From sequence record MN047793.1: DNA of 64,000 nucleotides. One strand, 5' to 3'. The translations under genes were made by a program, and so were the position numbers. Shown piece by piece: positions 8,873 to 49,639 of the stretch. Positions within the stretch are counted from its first letter, which is position 1. Each line of letters opens with the position of its first letter. The notes under the pieces are model-generated. The model was not told the DNA's origin. It worked only from the letters and a program-made list of their open reading frames with translations, and ran no database searches.

Positions 8873-8901
8873 ATTATAAATGATCAGTCACAACCTGTCA
8901 A
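8873..8901 (-). promoter_or_regulatory. Consensus sigma70 early promoter
   Basis: TTGACA-17-TATAAT on the minus strand. Confidence 0.85.
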
Positions 8902-8904
8902 CTA

Positions 8905-9048
8905 CTAATTGCCTAACGACCATAGACAATACATCACACCATGACCAACACTACGACACTCATCCCACTGCCAGCGGATACACCCACCAATCAATAACAC
9001 AAAAACCAATACCCCAGCACCAATCCACAATCGCTCATACCACTTCAT
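8905..9048 (-). CDS. 47-aa membrane miniprotein (not in the ORF track)
   Basis: MKWYERLWIGAGVLVFVLLIGGCIRWQWDECRSVGHGVMYCLWSLGN; RBS GAGAGG; own promoter upstream. Confidence 0.65.
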   Translation of the reverse strand: MKWYERLWIGAGVLVFVLLIGGCIRWQWDECRSVGHGVMYCLWSLGN

Positions 9049-9073
9049 ACACGCCTCTCTTTAGTATTAGCAA

Positions 9074-9102
9074 ATTATAACCAATCGTACCATAACTGTC
9101 AA
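9074..9102 (-). promoter_or_regulatory. Consensus sigma70 early promoter
   Basis: TTGACA-17-TATAAT on the minus strand. Confidence 0.85.
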
Positions 9103-9148
9103 CTACCATCATTCCCACCCAATACCACAGACCCCCGGCCTACCTCCC

Positions 9149-9209
9149 ATTTTACACTATAATTATTTTTTGTCAACCCCTTGACAACACAACTCATTTG
9201 CGGTATGCT
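9149..9209. promoter_or_regulatory. Divergent promoter pair
   Basis: Minus TTGACA(9171-9176)-16-TAAAAT; plus TTGACA(9181-9186)-17-TATGCT(9204-9209). Confidence 0.7.
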
Positions 9210-9242
9210 CTATCTGCCTAGAGCTATACCTGAACAACCAAA

Positions 9243-9408
9243 TGTTAAATTTCCGTTATTGTTAAAATAGCGTTAGGAAATTGTTAACAAATCGTTAAAT
9301 GTTAAAATATCGTTAAGAAAAGGTTATGATTTCGTTAACTTAACACTTTCTTAACATCTCAGCCCATATGTTAAAATTTCGTTAGAGGACCAGCCCACAT
9401 GACTTAAC
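9243..9408. repeat. Helically phased GTTA iteron-like array (candidate origin or protein-binding field)
   Basis: GTTA at 9244, 9255, 9261, 9272, 9283, 9294, 9301, 9312, 9323, 9334, 9370 and 9381 (11-bp steps within groups); inverted TTAAC pair at 9340 and 9351. Confidence 0.75.
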
Positions 9409-9544
9409 ATATCCATAAGAGGGTGTCAACAGATTCCCGACAAACGGTCAGTCGTAAGGTACTGATTCCTAAAGGGTTTGTTCCACTGGGAGAAATATAT
9501 GCATTCGTTGGTGAGAACCTATACGAACTAAAATTACACATAAA

Positions 9545-9562
9545 TTCTTTAAGCTTAAAGAA
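9545..9562. repeat. Perfect 18-bp palindrome
   Basis: TTCTTTAAGCTTAAAGAA. Confidence 0.8.
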
Positions 9563-9662
9563 ATAGAAATGATATAGTTCCTATATTGATATGATATCAT
9601 AGTGATATCACAATGATCTTAAAATTATAGAAGTAGGTGTTGCAAGGTTTACGAAATATTTC

Positions 9663-9691
9663 TTGCATTTCCTGTACAAATATCTTATAAT
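9663..9691 (+). promoter_or_regulatory. Sigma70 promoter driving the paralog array
   Basis: TTGCAT-17-TATAAT, 75 nt upstream of the first array ATG. Confidence 0.75.
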
Positions 9692-9765
9692 TACTCTACT
9701 AATTTCCTGTTTCAATACCTTCTCATTCGAACTAATAAGTCCTAACGCAAGCGTTACCCTTTATT

Positions 9766-10131
9766 ATGATCACCTTACCGTCTGGTTTTGCTACTACTAT
9801 TAAGATACTTCCCAAAGAGGATGGCGATTTTTATCATGATTTGTATGTGTTGTGTAACAGTATGGATTACACCTATAGTTATCTTAAGTTTTGTTCCGTG
9901 AGTCGTATTCAGGAATGGCATTGGTGTGAGGGTGATGTGTCTATTAACATGGTTAATGGCAAGCGTGATGACGGAGTTAGCATTTACATCAATGAGCGAT
10001 TGGTTGGTATATTTGCTACTGATAGCAGGATGTATCCGAGGCTGTATCCTATTCATAACCGTCGTGTAGAGGGTGGTGATGTTTATACAGCTATGTTGGC
10101 ATTCATTAAGAAGTGGGAGATTGGGGTATGA
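9766..10131 (+). CDS. Array paralog 1 (subtype A)
   Basis: NSM..Y / QEWHWCEGD / IYINERLV / AFIKKWEIGV. Confidence 0.8.
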   Translation: MITLPSGFATTIKILPKEDGDFYHDLYVLCNSMDYTYSYLKFCSVSRIQEWHWCEGDVSINMVNGKRDDGVSIYINERLVGIFATDSRMYPRLYPIHNRRVEGGDVYTAMLAFIKKWEIGV

Positions 10132-10448
10132 CGCTACCGTCCCCTGTTAATGGCGAAATACAATTCTATGTTGGGTTGTTCTTTCATGAGTTGTATCGGT
10201 TGTTGAACTCCATGGAGCACACCTATCATTATCAGTCTAAGGAATGGATGTGGTGTGAAGGTGATAACTGTATTAACGTAGTGAGCGATAATGGTGAAAT
10301 TATCATTCACATCAATGAGAGAATAGTTGGCAGATATATGATGGGTAGTGGTACTCCTAAGTTATGGTCTCATGATTTGGTTATAGATGATGGAGATGTT
10401 CATACAGCTATGTTGGCATTCATTGATAAGTGGGGAATTGGTGTATGA
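10128..10448 (+). CDS. Array paralog 2 (A)
   Basis: ATGA overlap; EWMWCEGD, IHINERIV, FIDKWGIGV. Confidence 0.8.
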   Translation: MTLPSPVNGEIQFYVGLFFHELYRLLNSMEHTYHYQSKEWMWCEGDNCINVVSDNGEIIIHINERIVGRYMMGSGTPKLWSHDLVIDDGDVHTAMLAFIDKWGIGV

Positions 10449-18986: not shown

Positions 18987-19301
18987 ATGAAACTATCCGA
19001 CATCCGCCCCGACGTTATTAATGAATCTGATGATGAAAATAAAGACGTTAGTAAGGCACCACCTCCTGGCAAGCTAGGTGAATTCATCACTGCAAAACAG
19101 GCTGCAAAAATTCTTAAAGTAACTCCAAGCCGTGTCCGTCAATTCATTCAAGATGGTCGTCTTAAGTCATATGGCCCAGAGGTTGGTCGTCGTGACAACA
19201 TGCTGAAACTATCTGCTGTTACCAAGCTAGCTGATAAGGAGCGTCCTATTACAGGCCGTCCAGACGAAGGTAAGGGCACTTCTGAGAAGAAAGAAGACTA
19301 A
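18987..19301 (+). CDS. Excisionase/MerR-like HTH (HTH_17) DNA-binding protein
   Basis: FITAKQAAKILKVTPSRVRQFIQDGRLKS. Confidence 0.8.
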   Translation: MKLSDIRPDVINESDDENKDVSKAPPPGKLGEFITAKQAAKILKVTPSRVRQFIQDGRLKSYGPEVGRRDNMLKLSAVTKLADKERPITGRPDEGKGTSEKKED

Positions 19302-34007: not shown

Positions 34008-37000
34008 ATGCATAATGCTTCGTATAAATTTCAAATTGACCAGTCAGTATTCATTTTAAATAAAGATGAAGGCAGTATTCTTTCAGCCAAAATTGTTCAA
34101 TTAAATATTGATCTTTATGGTGCTACAGCCGATGATAGCCAAAAAACATATCTCGTAGTCCTTTTAACAGACACGGCGTGCACACAATGTCAAATTTTAG
34201 AATACAGTGAAGATGTTATTTACGCTACACTGTTCGAGGCTAATTTAGCATTACAAGAATATCGTGGAGAAATTCCTTCATACCAAATTTTTTATCAATT
34301 TGAACCCAACGATAACGTTTATGTGGTTGATCGTCAAGCATTTCAAGTAAATTCTGGTAAAGTTGTTACTGTAAATCTCAAGAGCTTTTTACAAAATAAT
34401 ACTATCAAAGTAAATGTAGATTATAGCGTTCTGGTTAAATCAAGTAACTCAGTGGTTTTGGTTGATGGCGATGATATCTTCGCGTCATCTTCTACTGCGT
34501 CAGGGTCCCTGTATCGTAGTCCTACTCCAACACCTACACGAACCATTACCCCAACTCCTACACAAACCCGTACACCTACAGCCAGTGTAACGGTAACACC
34601 TACACAAACACAGACAGCTACCCCAAGTGCTACTGCGGCAGTTTCGCCAACTCCTGTGGAATCTGCCACGCCAACTCCAACGGTAAGTACTACTGTGTCA
34701 GGAACACCTAGCGCCTCAGTTACACCGACACCAACCGTATCAACCACAGCATCCGTAACTCCAGATGTAACAGTAACACCGACCCCGGAAGTATCTTCTA
34801 CTCCAGCAGTAACAACAACAGTCACACCTACCGTTACTACAACAGTAACCCCATCTACTACTGTATCAGTCACACCGTCACCAACGGTTTCTGCAACTAT
34901 GGGGGTATCGGTTACACCATCTGCTACAGTAACTCCTACACCTTCAGTTTCAGAATCTGTAGGGGTTACACAAACTCCGGTGGTAACATCATCACCAACA
35001 CCAACAGTTACAGCATCTAGCACTCCAACACCTACTGCATCCAGTGGTGTAACTGTAACGCCAACTGGTACTCCAGTGGCTTCAGCAACTCCCACCCCGA
35101 CTATTAGTGCAACAGTAACTGCGACAGTTACTGCAACTCCTACTGCCTCTAACGCAAGCGTTACACCATCTGCAACGCCTACGCCTACAGTAACACCTTC
35201 TACAGTAGCGGCGGGTACTCCAGATGGCCCAGAAGCTGCACTAATTTCTCCGGCAGTAGTGTCAAGAATGTCAACATATTCTTCTCCTACTAAAATCGGA
35301 TCAATTCAACCTGCTCCAGCATGGATGACATCAGGAAACGGAATTTATTGGGGCGATCAAGTAAAGGCTTCATCACCATCATTCCCTGATCGTCGCTTTA
35401 ACTATTTCTCAACGGACCATGCTGAAGGAACTGGTGGTATTGGTATTACTGTTTGCGTTGGTGATCCATCTGTTCTTACTAACTGGAAAGTTTACGATGA
35501 TGCCGTTGATGCGGGTTGGCTAGCCGATATCCCAAATCTACCAGCTAAGGGTGGACCAATATTCACAGGATTTGGCGGTGAAGGTAATCAGTACGAAACT
35601 CCTTGCGTAAACAAAGTGGGTGGTGAATTCTTAATGACATACCAAGCAACTAATGTTCCTGGCGCTCGTAACCAAGCAACATTAATTGCAGTATCTCCAA
35701 ATGGTGTGTCCAATTGGACGGGTACACATTCCCCATTGATGCAAGTTCCGGCTAGTGAAATTATCGGTGACGGCCACCATGGCTACATGAAATGGGGTCC
35801 AAATCCATTCCCACGATCAAACGTACCATATGACTATGTTGCTTACTCATTAGTAGGCGGACAATCTCGTTCAACTCAAGCCATGTGGGGTTCAAATGCT
35901 CCAAAAACTACATGGGTGTTCTTAGGTGGTATTGGTAAAATTTCTGGTCGTGCAACTCCATCAAACCGTTTTGCTACTAACTCGGATCGTTACAAGCTTG
36001 CTGGTACAGCCATCGATGTTAAGTCATTCCGTCAAACCCGTCAGGGTTACGCTGCAATGGGTGAATTTGCTGGTGTGGGTTCTGGTGCAACTGCACGTCC
36101 TGGCGAAATGTATGAGTTCCTATTTGCTGCTGACGGTAAGACGATTATCGGTCGTCCACAACTAGTAATTCCACGTGGTGCAGCGGGTTCAATCGATAAT
36201 GGTGAAGCCGCAACTGGTTCTGTATTAACCTTCGGAAATAAGAGCATAATTATCTACAATGCAGCGAATAGCTCAAATGCTAAGGTAAGTGCTCTTGCTG
36301 TATCGCCACTAGGTAATGCTATGAACACATGGTTCAATACCCAGTCTCCAGCTATTCCTCCAGCAAGTAAGATTACTACCAAAACATTTGACTTTAAAGG
36401 TGCATCTGCATTACCTGCGGGATTAACTGCGGTCAGTGCTGGTACTACCCTACCAACACCATCATTTTCTACTGATGGGTTATCTGTAACTGTTGATGGT
36501 ACCATGGCAACCAAGGGCGAATATCATGTATTCGAAGATGAAGGCTTTGACCCATTAACCACTGAATATGTAGATATCATGATCGATGGCTGGTCAACTA
36601 CTTCTAGTGCTGCGTACCGTCACCCATACATTGGGTTTTCCACCACAAAGTCACTTCGTGCAAGCTTCACTGATGCACTATTTGTAGGTACTGGCGAAAC
36701 CACCACTGCCACCATGGGCTACCAAGCTATCGCTGCTGGTGCACAACCAGTAACTGCTGGCACAAGTGAAGACTATTGGGGCGTTGGTTATGGTACGTCA
36801 GCTTTTGGTACCATGGCATTCCCGAAGAAAATGGTAGGTGTACGTATCTATCCAAAAGATAACATCGCATATATCTTAGGCGAAGGTGGCGTTGAACAAC
36901 AAGAATTCAAAGTAAGCGGCTCAAGCATGATGACCGCGTTTGACAAAACCAAACGGTGGTATCCATTCTTCGGATTCTTAGGTACGGAAGTATCTGCGGC

Positions 37001-39581
37001 TACGGAACGTGTAGCTCGTATGACTGTTAATGTATCTGCTCCAACACGTGCTACAGATGCAGCCACATTAGGTACTGTTGCTACTAATCAAACGTCAGCA
37101 AATGTAAACGCGCCGACCAACTTCGGTGCAGTAGCAATTGGTACAGCAGCAGCAGACCGCGTAGTAGCTTTCTACATCTCAGGACGTACCACAGGAGATA
37201 TGTCACTAACCGCAAGCTTTACTCCAGATAGTGGGGCAGCTATTCCATTAACTTTAGTCAAATTACATAAGAGCACATATGATGCTCCCAACGTGACATT
37301 CATGGCCCTATTTGTAGGCGCAATTCCAACTGGTACATCCGGTACTATTGCACCAGTAGCAACCGGCCCTACAGTAGTACGTTGGGGTTGTAAGGCTGTT
37401 CCAATGTATGGTGTACAGACTCTACCAGCCGACGTAATAGATGGTTCACTAGCTGGTTTTGGTAGTGTTATCGACCTCGGCATTAACAAATTCGAAGGTG
37501 GTATTACATCTCTAGCCACAATCCATTCTACTTCAGGAGCAACGTTACATAGTCACGCGGCAGAAGAAGTTTTATTCGATAGTGTGAGCCAAGAAATTCA
37601 CATTTATCCACAATCAAATGCTGCATACCAAGTTATTGGTGTACGTGGTGTAAGTGCGTCAGCAGTATCCATGGAAAATACCAATAGTGGTGGACATGCG
37701 ACTATTATTGCATCATGGAAAAAGGTTAGTAGCCCAACTGTAACACCTACAGTTACTCCTACCGTATCAGCAACTCCGTCAGTAACTCCGACGATATCAG
37801 TCACACCAACTGGGACACCTGTAGTAACTCCAACGGTAACGAGTTCAGCAACACCGACAAGTAGTACTACTCCAACAGTATCAAGTTCTGGCACTCCTAC
37901 GGTAACGCCGACAAGTACTGGTACTCCAACGGTAACGAGTTCTACGACTCCCACCGTGACCAGCACTGGTACTCCAGTAGTAACACCGACAAGTACTCCA
38001 ACGGTTGGCGTTTCTAGTACTCCTGCTGTAACTCCAACATCAACACCAACAAGTACAGCGGTTGCAGCTTCAGCTACTCCTACAGTAACTCCAACAAGTT
38101 CCACCGTAGCAGCTTCGCCGACACCTACAGTAACGCCCACAAGTACTGTAGTGTCAGCTACGCCAACGGGTACTCCACCAGTTACTACAACGATTACACC
38201 AACCGTAACTTCTACAGCTACTCCAACGATAACGGCTACCGCCACTCCTACAAGTACTGTAGCAGCAGCTTCACCAACTCCTACACCAACGGTTACCATA
38301 ACGTCGTCCGCTAATACTAATTTAAGTCCACAAATGTTTGCGGTACGTAATGCTGCTATCAGTAATACACAAGACACCCGTGCATATTCAAATGTAGCTC
38401 AACGTTGGCAATATTTTACTGGATCAGGTGACTTAGCTGAAATTAGTGTCGTATTCAACAATTGGAGTATGAATGCTACTACTAATAGCATCTTGAACCC
38501 AGGAAATGATACTCCAATTCAAGCCTGCTCAATCGAAATTAATGGTGTTACTGCTCCAGTTACCTTTAGTGGGTCACGTACTCGTACGTTACTTAACGGT
38601 GAAGATGACGTGGTATCAGATGCAATTCCAGCATCAGCATTCGGATTATCATCAATTCCGCGTGGCAGCACAGTGTTTATTAAATTCATCTTCGCAATGG
38701 GTGCACCAAACCGTAATATGCCAATTTCCAATTTCCGACAGACTTCAGACGGTGGATACTGCATCTGGTATGACCCAGCTAGCGTCACAGTTAGTAGCGT
38801 AGATAGCCCAGGAGCTTTCACTGTTACTGGTGCTGTAAATAACACCAATTCAGTGGTTCGTCCATTCGCCTTCATGCCACGAATTGTAGGTAGATACCTC
38901 CCAGGATATGCTCCAGTATGGGTAGCCGTTGGTGACTCAATCACTCAAGGATTGAATGATACTTCTGCCAATCGTATTGGTGGTCGTGGTTGGATTGGCC
39001 GTATGTTGGCCGATTCCGATGGCGATTCTAATGGCCTATCTTACTGTAATATGGGTGTGGCTTCTGCATTGTCTATCACATCAACAAACAGTCCTCGTTT
39101 CTGGAGCGCATACAAGTATGCTACCCACGGTACCTTCATGCATGGTACCAACGACTTCGATACATCAGGCACTGGTGTTACTGTTGCGACTATGCAGACT
39201 CGTGCAACTAATGGTATCAACCAAATGCGCACAGCACCGGGTAGCCGTATTACAACCATCATGGTTGGTAAAATTATCGTTCGTACTACATCAACTGATG
39301 GTTGGAAGACAACTGCTAACCAAACATATCGTGGTACCGGATGGGCACCAGGGGCAAACATCGACCAATTCAATGCATGGCTTGACACACAAAACGGTGT
39401 GCTGTTTAATGCATTAATTCCATGGACGTTCCCACGTGACTCAAGTATTCCACAAATGTGGGGTAACGATGGCGGGGTAACAAATAACTACATGACCGCC
39501 GATGGTACACACCCAACCGCGACCGCTTACATCGGTATGGCAAACGAGGCTCGCTCAGCAAGATTGGCATTACCAGCTTAA
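34008..39581 (+). CDS. 1857-aa modular virion or fibre protein: tandem N-terminal domains, PT linker, glycosidase-like beta-propeller, beta-sandwich modules, PT linker, SGNH hydrolase
   Basis: SGNH blocks VGDSITQG, HGTNDF and DGTHP; two long T/P/S/V tracts; ATAAATA at 33978-33984. Confidence 0.75.
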   Translation: MHNASYKFQIDQSVFILNKDEGSILSAKIVQLNIDLYGATADDSQKTYLVVLLTDTACTQCQILEYSEDVIYATLFEANLALQEYRGEIPSYQIFYQFEPNDNVYVVDRQAFQVNSGKVVTVNLKSFLQNNTIKVNVDYSVLVKSSNSVVLVDGDDIFASSSTASGSLYRSPTPTPTRTITPTPTQTRTPTASVTVTPTQTQTATPSATAAVSPTPVESATPTPTVSTTVSGTPSASVTPTPTVSTTASVTPDVTVTPTPEVSSTPAVTTTVTPTVTTTVTPSTTVSVTPSPTVSATMGVSVTPSATVTPTPSVSESVGVTQTPVVTSSPTPTVTASSTPTPTASSGVTVTPTGTPVASATPTPTISATVTATVTATPTASNASVTPSATPTPTVTPSTVAAGTPDGPEAALISPAVVSRMSTYSSPTKIGSIQPAPAWMTSGNGIYWGDQVKASSPSFPDRRFNYFSTDHAEGTGGIGITVCVGDPSVLTNWKVYDDAVDAGWLADIPNLPAKGGPIFTGFGGEGNQYETPCVNKVGGEFLMTYQATNVPGARNQATLIAVSPNGVSNWTGTHSPLMQVPASEIIGDGHHGYMKWGPNPFPRSNVPYDYVAYSLVGGQSRSTQAMWGSNAPKTTWVFLGGIGKISGRATPSNRFATNSDRYKLAGTAIDVKSFRQTRQGYAAMGEFAGVGSGATARPGEMYEFLFAADGKTIIGRPQLVIPRGAAGSIDNGEAATGSVLTFGNKSIIIYNAANSSNAKVSALAVSPLGNAMNTWFNTQSPAIPPASKITTKTFDFKGASALPAGLTAVSAGTTLPTPSFSTDGLSVTVDGTMATKGEYHVFEDEGFDPLTTEYVDIMIDGWSTTSSAAYRHPYIGFSTTKSLRASFTDALFVGTGETTTATMGYQAIAAGAQPVTAGTSEDYWGVGYGTSAFGTMAFPKKMVGVRIYPKDNIAYILGEGGVEQQEFKVSGSSMMTAFDKTKRWYPFFGFLGTEVSAATERVARMTVNVSAPTRATDAATLGTVATNQTSANVNAPTNFGAVAIGTAAADRVVAFYISGRTTGDMSLTASFTPDSGAAIPLTLVKLHKSTYDAPNVTFMALFVGAIPTGTSGTIAPVATGPTVVRWGCKAVPMYGVQTLPADVIDGSLAGFGSVIDLGINKFEGGITSLATIHSTSGATLHSHAAEEVLFDSVSQEIHIYPQSNAAYQVIGVRGVSASAVSMENTNSGGHATIIASWKKVSSPTVTPTVTPTVSATPSVTPTISVTPTGTPVVTPTVTSSATPTSSTTPTVSSSGTPTVTPTSTGTPTVTSSTTPTVTSTGTPVVTPTSTPTVGVSSTPAVTPTSTPTSTAVAASATPTVTPTSSTVAASPTPTVTPTSTVVSATPTGTPPVTTTITPTVTSTATPTITATATPTSTVAAASPTPTPTVTITSSANTNLSPQMFAVRNAAISNTQDTRAYSNVAQRWQYFTGSGDLAEISVVFNNWSMNATTNSILNPGNDTPIQACSIEINGVTAPVTFSGSRTRTLLNGEDDVVSDAIPASAFGLSSIPRGSTVFIKFIFAMGAPNRNMPISNFRQTSDGGYCIWYDPASVTVSSVDSPGAFTVTGAVNNTNSVVRPFAFMPRIVGRYLPGYAPVWVAVGDSITQGLNDTSANRIGGRGWIGRMLADSDGDSNGLSYCNMGVASALSITSTNSPRFWSAYKYATHGTFMHGTNDFDTSGTGVTVATMQTRATNGINQMRTAPGSRITTIMVGKIIVRTTSTDGWKTTANQTYRGTGWAPGANIDQFNAWLDTQNGVLFNALIPWTFPRDSSIPQMWGNDGGVTNNYMTADGTHPTATAYIGMANEARSARLALPA

Positions 39582-46621: not shown

Positions 46622-49600
46622 GTGATCATTTATCCTTTGGTTAATAGTGTGGTAAACATTAAGGGGGTTCCGTCGTCAACTCCTACTCCACCACCGACCC
46701 CTTCAACTACACGAAGTGTAACCCCTAGTGCTTCAGTAGCACTATCACCTGTTGCTGTAACTCCAACACCGACACGTACCCCAACAAGAACTCCTGCTGT
46801 TACGGCAACACCAACACCTTCTGTAACTAGATCATCTCCTGGCGTTACATCGTCTCCTACAACAACTCCCGTAGTTAATGTGACAGCTACACCAACCGTA
46901 ACGGCAACCATTACAAGAACTTCTACCCCAGTAGTAGCATCATTAACACCGACACCTACAGCTGCGGTATCTGGAACTCCAGCGCCTACCTCTACAACCA
47001 CACCTACAATTACTCCAACAGTTTCCGGTTCTGCTATTCCAGTAACACCTACTCCAACGGTCACGCGCACTACTACGGTCACTCCTACAGTAACAGCAAC
47101 TGTAAGTAGTTCTTCTGCTTTGGCTACTGTTACCCCTACACCGTCAGTATCTACATCCGGTCCAGCATTAACGGTAACACCTACCATTACGCCCACCGTG
47201 TCTACAACAGGAACACCAGCAGTAACGTCAACTCGTACGCCAACTGCTACTGTATCTGTGACACCAAGTGTGTCGCAATCCGCACCAGTTGCTACTCCGA
47301 CTCCAACGCCAACAATTTCTACTACTCAGTCAATAGCAGTAAGTCCTACAGCGACAATTACTCCGACTCCAACGCCAACACCTACACCGAGTGGAACACC
47401 ACCAGTAACACCAACTAGAACAGCTTCACCTACTGTGACTGCGGCCGTTTCGCCAACTAGTACTGCGACCGTAACACCTACCCCATCAAGTAGTGTTCCT
47501 GCTGCTAGTGCAGATGTGACCCCAACAGTTACGCCATCTGTTACAGTAAGTATTACAGTTTCACCAACGCCAACAGTGACTATTACGCCACAAAGTACAG
47601 CAGGGCCGACGCCCAGTGTAACAGTCACTGCTAGCCGGACGCCGGCAGTGACGCCTCCAGAAACACCAGAAGGAACTCCAACGCCCACACCCACAATAAG
47701 TTTAACCCCCACCTTCACACCAACTCCAACACCATCAGATACGCCGCAAATAACTCCAACGGCTACCGTAACACTTACACCCACTCTCACAAATACGCCT
47801 TCCGTCACAGTTTCGGATACGCCAGCAGTAACCCCTACCCTCACACCAACAATAAGTCCTTCGGATACTCCAACTCCGACCGTAACAGCAACATCTTCTG
47901 TTACCCCCACACTAACCACAACGCCAACACCAACCGTAACGGCAAGTTTAACACCTACTTTTACCACTACGCCGACGCCAACAATAACTGCGAGTGTAAC
48001 ACCGACAGTAACAACAACACTTACACCCACAGTTACTACAACGTCCAGTGTAACACCTACTGTAACAACAACATTGACGCCTACCATAACTGCGTCAGTG
48101 ACGCCTACAATTACACCATCTCCTACTCCAGTAACTGATGTAGCTCCAGCAAATAGTAATGCTCGTCAAGCATCAGCCACATCTAATGGATCAGAAGATT
48201 CCGTATCTTCTACCGGAGATGATAGCGACGCTGACGGATTTATGGTGATGACGGTAAGTGATGATCCTGGCGTTCCTATGACCGTATCTGACTCAAACAA
48301 CTTGAATTGGAACATGATCAGTACCTACACATACAATGATGGTACAAATAAGGGCCGCGTTTCCGCATATTTGGCTGATGGTTTAGGGTCACTTAACCAT
48401 ACTATTACTGCTACCAGAACTGGTAGTAATTGGCCGCAAATTTATGTAATTCCATTGAAGAAAAACCGTCCGGGCTATCTGGCCGTAGATTCAATGGCAA
48501 TGGGACCACAATATCCAGATAGTCCATTTACTACAAATATTTTAACTCCTACTAGACTTAATACCTTGGCCGTTGCTGGGTTTGGTACATTAAACACTGG
48601 CGTAGGCGATGTTGGTATTAGTAATCCATTCAATTTATTGACATCATCATCTGCTGCTGGTGTCTGGGATGGTGGTGTTGCCGTAAGCCCATTAATGAAT
48701 CTATCGCCAATGATAGCCACGTTCAATACGGATACTAATCAAGTTGGTAGAGCAATGTTATTCAACCTCTATGTGTCGGACACTTCTATCCCATTATCAC
48801 CGACACCAACACCAACGATTTCATTGACGCCGACGATCACTCCAACTATATCCGTGACGCCGACAATTTCAGTGACGCCAACAAATACAGTTACTCCAAC
48901 TGTAACACGCACCATAACCGTAACACCGTCGATTACACCCACAAATACAGTTACACCAACTGTAACGACAACGGCTACTACCACTGTAACACCGTCAGTA
49001 ACACCATCAGTTACACCCACTGGTACTCCTGCGGTGACACAGACACCAACTCCCACCGTGACTGCGACCATTTCGCCATCACCGGGAGCATCAGTGACAC
49101 CTACACCATCCGTAACGGCCACTCCTGCGGTGACACAGACAACAACCCCAACCGTAACACCTACGATTTCGGTTACCCCGTCTGTGACGCCTACAATTTC
49201 CATTACGCCTACGAGAACACCAACCCCTACGGTGACACGTACAGTAACAGTAACGCCATCAGTAACACGTACAGTGACGCTCACGCCATCTAGAACTGCT
49301 ACTATAACTCCTAGTGTTACTCCGACATTGACGCGTACTCCTACAATAACCCCAACACCATCCCCATTAATTCCGGTATTGAATATTACAGGGGTTCCAT
49401 TAACTGGTAAAATCGGTGTTCCGTATAATGGTCAGTTAACTGCTTCTGGTGGTGCTGGTGGAGCATACGTATATAACCTATGGTACAACAGTTTTCCCAT
49501 CGGAATGAGTATGAATTCCTCAACAGGTGCAATTACTGGTACTCCTACATTATTGTCAGGAACTTATGAGATTGGTGTACAAGTATGTGCTAATGGATAT

Positions 49601-49639
49601 TGTGACCAAGAACTGATAACTTTAGTCATCAGTCCATAA
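46622..49639 (+). CDS. Pro/Thr-rich mucin-like protein with a central beta module and C-terminal putative Ig (He_PIG-like) domain
   Basis: Long TPT tracts; C-terminal [16 protein letters not shown]...[17 protein letters not shown]. Confidence 0.75.

Follow-up and report, generated by a model that had tools for sequence, protein, structure and literature searches.

A Single-Copy Array of Bipartite 17-bp Repeats as a Candidate Mark of the Right Chromosome End in the Jumbo Phage Xoo-sp13

Introduction

How does a jumbo phage with terminal repeats of 40-70 kb specify where its chromosome ends? To our knowledge, nothing is known about end definition in such phages. The question is raised here by a short non-coding field, dense in the tetranucleotide GTTA, within MN047793.1, the 309,023-bp record of the Xanthomonas oryzae jumbo phage Xoo-sp13. 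We have analysed it in a window of 64,000 bp, which matches this record at 100%; window positions correspond to record positions minus 62,000 and are used throughout unless the record is named. A first-pass annotation had considered the field iteron-like and proposed three options for its function: an origin of replication, a packaging or terminal site, or an operator for the adjacent gene array. Closely connected with these options is the situation in phage XacN1, for which the exact ends of the chromosome were established by direct sequencing, following the detection of a two-fold coverage step and restriction mapping; the paper concerned describes the terminal repeats and names no cis element, iterons or packaging signals (PMC5852040).

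The reading that we favor, tentatively, is that the field constitutes a single-copy, cis-acting array of candidate protein-binding sites, located at the right boundary of the direct terminal repeat (DTR) and marking this end for cutting or packaging. A unique, conserved and easily mutated array of 140 bp beside a mapped end would provide a handle on the recognition protein, as well as for packaging and cleavage assays; moreover, it allows one to ask whether the definition of the end is coupled with early transcription and DNA entry, as it is in T7 and T5.

Structure of the Repeat Field

The segment 9243-9408 contains 12 copies of GTTA on the plus strand (starting at 9244, 9255, 9261, 9272, 9283, 9294, 9301, 9312, 9323, 9334, 9370 and 9381), exactly where the first-pass annotation had placed them, together with five copies on the minus strand that read as TAAC and start at 9285, 9336, 9341, 9352 and 9405. 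When these 166 bp are shuffled 20,000 times with dinucleotides preserved, the plus-strand count averages 1.65 +/- 1.17 and reaches a maximum of 7, while overlapping GTTA-N7-GTTA pairs, of which the field has eight, average 0.014. This is also the stretch of 166 bp richest in GTTA within the whole window, its runner-up elsewhere having about five copies. Other clusters of 5-mers in the window lie only inside long open reading frames (ORFs) with coding tandem repeats. In two such ORFs, at 34008-39581 (1857 aa) and 46622-49639 (1005 aa), the repeats measure 24-45 bp; both ORFs belong to a region with raised G+C and strong negative GC skew.

The longer recurring unit suspected at first can be defined precisely: the field resolves into seven units of 17 bp with consensus TGTTAAAAnnTCGTTAA, each composed of two GTTA half-sites 11 bp apart, with six units in direct orientation and one inverted (table 1). 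On the minus strand the units read TTAACG-N5-TTAACA. The claim that all sites lie on one face of the DNA needs to be qualified. The 11-bp phasing is maintained within each block of two units, and there the claim stands; the successive blocks have phases of 0, 6, 2 and 5 modulo 11, and hence the sites cannot all share the same helix face.

Table 1. Features of the repeat field and its surroundings in the Xoo-sp13 window
Feature	Window position	Strand	Remarks
Unit U1	9243-9259	+	Record 71243-71259; 3 mismatches to consensus TGTTAAAAnnTCGTTAA
Unit U2	9260-9276	+	2 mismatches
Unit U3	9282-9298	+	1 mismatch
Unit U4	9300-9316	+	Perfect consensus; aligned with the first, degenerate XacN1 unit
Unit U5	9322-9338	+	End abuts the inverted unit at the conserved core GTTAACTTAAC
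Unit U6	9340-9356	-	Sole inverted unit; position and orientation kept in XacN1 and contig L020
Unit U7	9369-9385	+	1 mismatch; final complete unit; predicted DTR end about 135 bp farther on
Lone inverted half-site	9403-9409	-	TGTTAAG on the minus strand
Predicted right end of the DTR	9520-9521		From alignment to the mapped XacN1 end (65875); depth confines the step to 9155-10420
Sigma-70-like promoter, outward	9181-9209	+	TTGACA, 17 nt, TATGCT; through the field toward the DTR end
Sigma-70-like promoter, inward	9149-9176	-	TTGACA, 16 nt, TAAAAT; into the DTR
Perfect consensus sigma-70 promoter, inward	9074-9102	-	12/12; into the DTR
Second perfect consensus sigma-70 promoter, inward	8873-8901	-	12/12; into the DTR
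Two TGATATCA palindromes	9592-9610		11 bp apart; pair unique in each genome

The periodicity of AA dinucleotides in the field is unremarkable (rank about 200 among 6384 windows), and the periodicity of A-tracts, or curvature, shows nothing exceptional. Scans of the region with Rfam and for tRNA genes returned no match, and the spacer between the field and the terminus folds as a single strand no better than shuffled sequences in either Xoo-sp13 or XacN1.

Uniqueness and Conservation

All matches to the 17-bp unit with up to two mismatches are confined to the field in both the Xoo-sp13 and XacN1 genomes, while matches with three mismatches elsewhere are no commoner than those to a reversed control pattern. 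Even the loose pattern GTTA-N7-GTTA has 9 of its 15 occurrences in the 309-kb genome of Xoo-sp13 within the field. The array thus occupies a single locus per unique genome, as do the sites with which packaging proteins of other phages recognize their DNA. The R sites of lambda cosB, the hexamers of P1 pac and the pacL and pacR sites of SPP1 are all clusters of short protein-binding motifs, unique in their genome, that lie about 50-250 bp from the cut producing the mature end.

The first-pass annotation had suggested looking for synteny in related phages, and this comparison did reveal the field at the homologous place in XacN1 and in one metagenome contig, L020. XacN1 is the only phage in the collection having DNA similarity to the segment 8800-9800, which is restricted to the non-coding part and amounts to about 75% identity. 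It carries five units (four direct and one inverted) at the homologous site and none elsewhere. Common to both phages is the arrangement of a direct unit, the inverted unit, a gap of 12-13 bp and another direct unit, built around the core GTTAACTTAAC, while Xoo-sp13 has three extra units at the left and XacN1 one extra at the right, which indicates that units are gained and lost. The genes next to the field on either side show no detectable homology between the two phages, so the non-coding blocks form an island that is better conserved than its coding neighbors. Contig L020 is 97.6% identical to XacN1; no change separates the two over the 154 bp covering the field, in comparison with 43 substitutions elsewhere in 690 aligned columns, and one change is present between the field and the terminus. 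This pattern of conservation pertains to a field that is known from two independent lineages only.

Beyond these sequences, scans of IMG/VR with three conserved patterns gave no matches; the metagenome scan recovered L020 as the one contig resembling XacN1, its remaining matches being unrelated; and the scan of isolate genomes hit unrelated loci only, mostly in Bacteroidota. The distant relatives that can be reached via a flanking protein have no GTTA field, the related Stenotrophomonas jumbo phages, RAS14 and CM1, have neither motif nor cluster (their equivalent divergent junction measuring only 74 bp), and the related phage CBB, with a DTR of 22 kb, has no comparable iteron-like array at the right boundary of its repeat. 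The absence from RAS14, CM1 and CBB speaks against the reading as an end mark.

Two further observations emerged from the contigs examined. A comparison of L020 (from 11023) with L002 (from 6624) shows that the XacN1-like contig maintains 97.6% identity until the first gene of the paralog array starts, after which it is rearranged and only a block of 86.7% identity returns, 1.2 kb on; the paralog array lying just outside the repeat therefore turns over fast. In an unrelated metagenome contig of 2.5 kb (L021:1700-1800, viewed on the minus strand), three GTTAAG motifs with 11-bp spacing are followed by a cluster of GTTAAC and TTAAC within a divergent intergenic region, the flanking ORFs of which have no Pfam family.

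Position Relative to the Chromosome End

The DTR of XacN1 comprises positions 1-65875, a length of 65,875 bp, and we have confirmed its boundaries by matching the tail and head of the record to the internal copies. The XacN1 units occupy 65647-65749, and the array thus stops 126 bp short of the mapped right end, well within the few hundred base pairs expected of a pac or cos site. An equivalent proximity can be deduced for Xoo-sp13 along the following lines. Joining the end of its record to the start produces a junction that aligns exactly with the left terminus of XacN1, and its 309,023 bp resemble XacN1 minus one copy of the repeat (318,795 bp). Contig depth, a crude measure taken from the Logan contigs of the one public run with Xoo-sp13 DNA, is 2067 up to 8428 and then 2093 and 1774 up to 9155, falls to 1552 for the contig covering 9187-10447, and settles at 854-933 rightward, including a contig of 51 kb. 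The drop, about 2.4-fold between 9155 and 10420, falls in the same intergenic region as the end of XacN1. The homologous record start and this drop in depth, taken together, indicate that the DTR of Xoo-sp13 is collapsed, measures about 71.5 kb and would end near 9520. On the assumption of flat coverage, however, contig 9187-10447 has a depth that fits a step closer to 9900 than to 9520.

These results are of practical consequence, for the deposited genome of Xoo-sp13 appears to be devoid of the second repeat copy, and its virion DNA would probably measure about 380.5 kb, as judged from sequence and depth. They also bear on how the end is set. In Xoo-sp13 the step occurs at the homologous site despite a unique genome that is 9.8 kb shorter, which favors an end set by sequence over one set by the filling of the head. 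Among the three options initially proposed, it is the packaging or terminal site that gains from position, given the 126 bp separating the array from the end in XacN1 and the depth step in the same region of Xoo-sp13. Since the array is inside the repeat, every virion DNA has it at the very tip of the right end, with a second copy internally.

On the other side of the cut, the pair of TGATATCA palindromes lies 73 bp beyond the end in XacN1 and 72 bp beyond the predicted end in Xoo-sp13, so that the cut would be flanked by two conserved and unique repeat elements, the field inside and the palindromes outside. The pair could represent a dimer-of-dimers operator or else the far flank of the cut site.

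The left terminus, in contrast, has no GTTA array, and consequently the field cannot be the signal common to both cuts. A comparison of the left and right terminus regions revealed no common sequence beyond the short TTCGTT, which is the core of the second half-site. It precedes the left cut by 12-13 bp in both phages, and likewise the predicted right cut of Xoo-sp13, while in XacN1 the right cut is preceded by TCAGTT at 11 bp. This is a weak lead; its chance probability is about 0.04 after allowing for the post-hoc choice.

A Possible Mechanism of End Recognition

How might such an array act? If the field marks the end, a sequence-specific protein would bind head-to-tail along it, occupying each 17-bp unit through the two GTTA half-sites one helical turn apart, and the bound protein would then oligomerize over the five to seven units. 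The resulting complex would mark the concatemer, upon which a large terminase of T4 type would cut the right end some 125-135 bp farther downstream. On the far side of this cut, at a distance of about 72 bp, the two TGATATCA palindromes may complete the composite site as its second flank. The repeats, along with their uniqueness, conservation and distance to the mapped end of XacN1, are observed; protein binding, the connection with cutting or packaging and the exact end in Xoo-sp13 we infer.

The lineage of Xoo-sp13 and XacN1 has a capsid and terminase of T4 type, as well as recombination genes of the same type (RecA-like and SSB). Large terminases of this type normally work by a headful mechanism that is independent of sequence. 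A point against our reading is that we recognized no small terminase in Xoo-sp13, where the annotated candidate matches large-terminase families only. This protein, Xoosp13_242 ('terminase small subunit', 231 aa; L051:5245-5940 on the minus strand, record 153244-153939), retrieves exclusively large-terminase PHROGs, along their N-terminal ATPase part, and is encoded directly upstream of the large-terminase ORF. The large terminase thus appears to be split, with Xoosp13_242 as its N-terminal piece, and the small-terminase annotation would have to be corrected along with the length of the deposited genome.

A bolder proposition, which we regard as doubtful, is that the array constitutes the recognition site of a putative specificity factor converting the T4-type large terminase into a site-specific cutter. 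If true, such a system would produce the longest exact terminal repeats known (66-71 kb). TTCGTT could then be the place where the same putative factor positions the nuclease at each cut.

The general logic of an end-marking array resembles that of lambda cosB, P1 pac and SPP1 pac, and its position in XacN1 agrees with theirs, while its motif is unrelated. These phages differ also in their products, namely cohesive ends or headful series, versus the long exact terminal repeats of XacN1 and Xoo-sp13.

Parallels with the Ends of T7 and T5

The closest known parallels of the field are the heptamer arrays of T7 and Repeat Region 3 of T5, which are themselves of unsettled function. At the left end of T7, eight copies of CCTAAAG, mostly 13 bp apart, occupy positions 175-339 and adjoin the terminal repeat of 160 bp; such arrays have been linked to the processing of concatemers. 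The same end has the outward host promoter A0 and the three strong inward promoters A1-A3 within about 750 bp, and the right end of Xoo-sp13 is the mirror image of this layout, with one outward and three inward promoters (table 1). The differences are equally clear: the T7 array is outside the repeat, its elements are single heptamers and it has a sister at the opposite end, and the terminal repeat of T7 is diminutive beside the approximately 70 kb of Xoo-sp13.

Repeat Region 3 of T5 is an untranslated segment at 9194-10409, within which the left terminal repeat ends (10139). It shares with our field a non-coding and repeat-rich character, its location at the inner edge of a long DTR with early genes, and a conservation among relatives that exceeds that of the neighboring ORFs. 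Several copies of a 15-bp direct repeat are distributed within a few hundred base pairs on both sides of the repeat end. The T5 region differs by its many nested families of repeats and palindromes and its DnaA-like boxes, and it has no sequence similarity to the field, which is built from one bipartite 17-bp unit entirely inside the repeat, with one palindrome pair outside, and is devoid of DnaA boxes. The paired DnaA and DnaA-like boxes of T5, with their IRD'/IRC' layout of inverted repeats, have no counterpart in the field. The motif, the bipartite organization of the 17-bp unit, the confinement of the array to the repeat and the phage lineage in which it occurs therefore set the field apart from both T5 and T7.

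These parallels suggest another function, a signal for DNA entry, in the form either of a site for stopping or anchoring injection, similar to the proposed iss of T5, or of a site for a protein protecting the leading end. The T5 region has indeed been proposed to be an injection stop signal (Davison preprint 10.1101/866236), and its location is equivalent, at the inner border of a long terminal repeat filled with pre-early genes. Reading inward from the right tip of Xoo-sp13, one encounters the terminus, the array, the outward promoter and then three strong promoters of host type, all within about 650 bp, an order mirroring the leading end of T7. The assignment of the T5 iss is itself a hypothesis, however, and the field shares neither sequence with the T5 repeats nor their DnaA boxes. 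Moreover, Xoo-sp13 and XacN1 are not known to transfer their DNA in two steps; we consider an entry signal improbable. In terms of position alone, a function in transcription or in DNA entry would suit the array just as well, and end marking remains our preferred interpretation.

Replication Origin or Partition Site

Could the field be an origin, as its resemblance to iterons had suggested at first? According to this possibility, the units would be iterons for a phage initiator and the segment 9521-9660, with 76% A+T and 135 bp away from the field, would serve as the unwinding element. Several properties fit: the iteron origins of plasmids (Rep-iteron systems), lambda ori and T4 oriE likewise consist of several helically phased direct repeats of 17-22 bp that are unique in their genome; the locus is a node of divergent transcription where GC skew changes sign; and T7 has secondary origins near its genome ends. 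The switch in skew, however, is accounted for by the change of coding strand at this node. In contrast with iteron origins, the field has no adjacent initiator gene, and its location is tied to the genome end; the ten ORFs flanking it have no Pfam family and, among PHROGs, match those of unknown function only, nor does conservation between the two phages extend to the flanking genes. There is no DnaA-box or IHF consensus in the field either. Moreover, an origin inside the DTR would occur twice per virion genome, and the RecA-like and SSB proteins of T4 type would allow replication independent of any origin. The option of an origin has therefore found nothing specific in its support, the phase of A-tracts included, and we hold it to be unlikely. 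Helping to define or process the chromosome end is the most likely role of the array, with replication less likely.

Direct-repeat arrays with an 11-bp period are typical also of the centromeres recognized by ParR and TubR, so the field might resemble a parC- or tubC-like set of iterons that is bound by an adaptor for segregating or positioning phage DNA. The phage is lytic, encodes no tubulin or TubZ and has only sub-threshold P-loop matches to ParA, all of which renders a partition centromere scarcely credible.

Promoters and the Question of an Operator

The field is situated in a gene-free region of 920 bp, with leftward genes on one side and the rightward array of paralogous small genes on the other. 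Going downstream from the predicted start of the outward promoter, one reaches the field after about 27 bp; with respect to the inward promoter at 9176-9149, it lies 70-210 bp upstream. The latter promoter is inside the most conserved non-coding block (9127-9186), while the -35 element of the outward promoter is invariant in Xoo-sp13, XacN1 and L020. Along 8873-9209, where three promoters point leftward and one rightward, a back-to-back palindrome of -35 elements, TTGTCAACCCCTTGACA, is also invariant in these three sequences.

With an outward sigma-70-like promoter on one side of the field and the paralog array on the other, the third of the original options is conceivable. As an operator array, the field would be coated by a DNA-binding protein of phage or host that switches off or tunes the outward promoter into the paralog array, and possibly controls the strong inward early promoters too. 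The location of the field, a short distance past the outward promoter and upstream of the nearest inward one, agrees with this proposal, as does the conservation of promoter elements in all three sequences. So does the form of the repeat, because direct repeats of the type hexamer-N5-hexamer are typical of winged-helix proteins binding in tandem, for instance those of the OmpR/PhoB family, and the minus-strand reading of the units has precisely such hexamers with an 11-bp period. Further support comes from jumbo phage PA5oct, the 39-kb terminal repeats of which are rich in early genes (PMC7318152).

Against the operator speaks the restriction of the unit to one locus per genome, which implies that there is no regulon; five to seven units over 100-140 bp are, besides, excessive for a simple operator. 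Neither phage encodes a Trans_reg_C or LytTR domain, and the field does not overlap or abut a -35 element, unlike Pho boxes. On balance, we judge an operator to be rather unlikely, while giving it some weight as an alternative to the marking of the right end.

A regulatory use of similar repeats is nevertheless found elsewhere. In ten loci of Flavobacteriaceae and Bacteroidales (L035, L036, L040, L042, L044, L046, L015, L018, L024 and L049), the tandem AACTTAACATT, in which TTAAC recurs with an 11-bp period, precedes by about 40-80 bp an operon for PhoU_div (DUF47) and the PHO4 phosphate transporter. It looks like a Pho-box-type operator of Bacteroidota, and its presence upstream of these operons indicates that this type of repeat serves as a regulatory site in other organisms, a point in favor of the operator.

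Finally, a different motif of 20 bp, AAGTCCTAACGCAAGCGTTA, which includes the palindrome TAACGC/GCGTTA, is dispersed in the Xoo-sp13 genome in five copies, all on the plus strand, with counterparts in XacN1. One copy, at 9737-9756 of the window, directly precedes the first gene of the paralog array, and the others are at record positions 19010, 21747, 26365 and 78507. Its function may be that of a promoter specific to the phage, of a leader hairpin or of a processing site.
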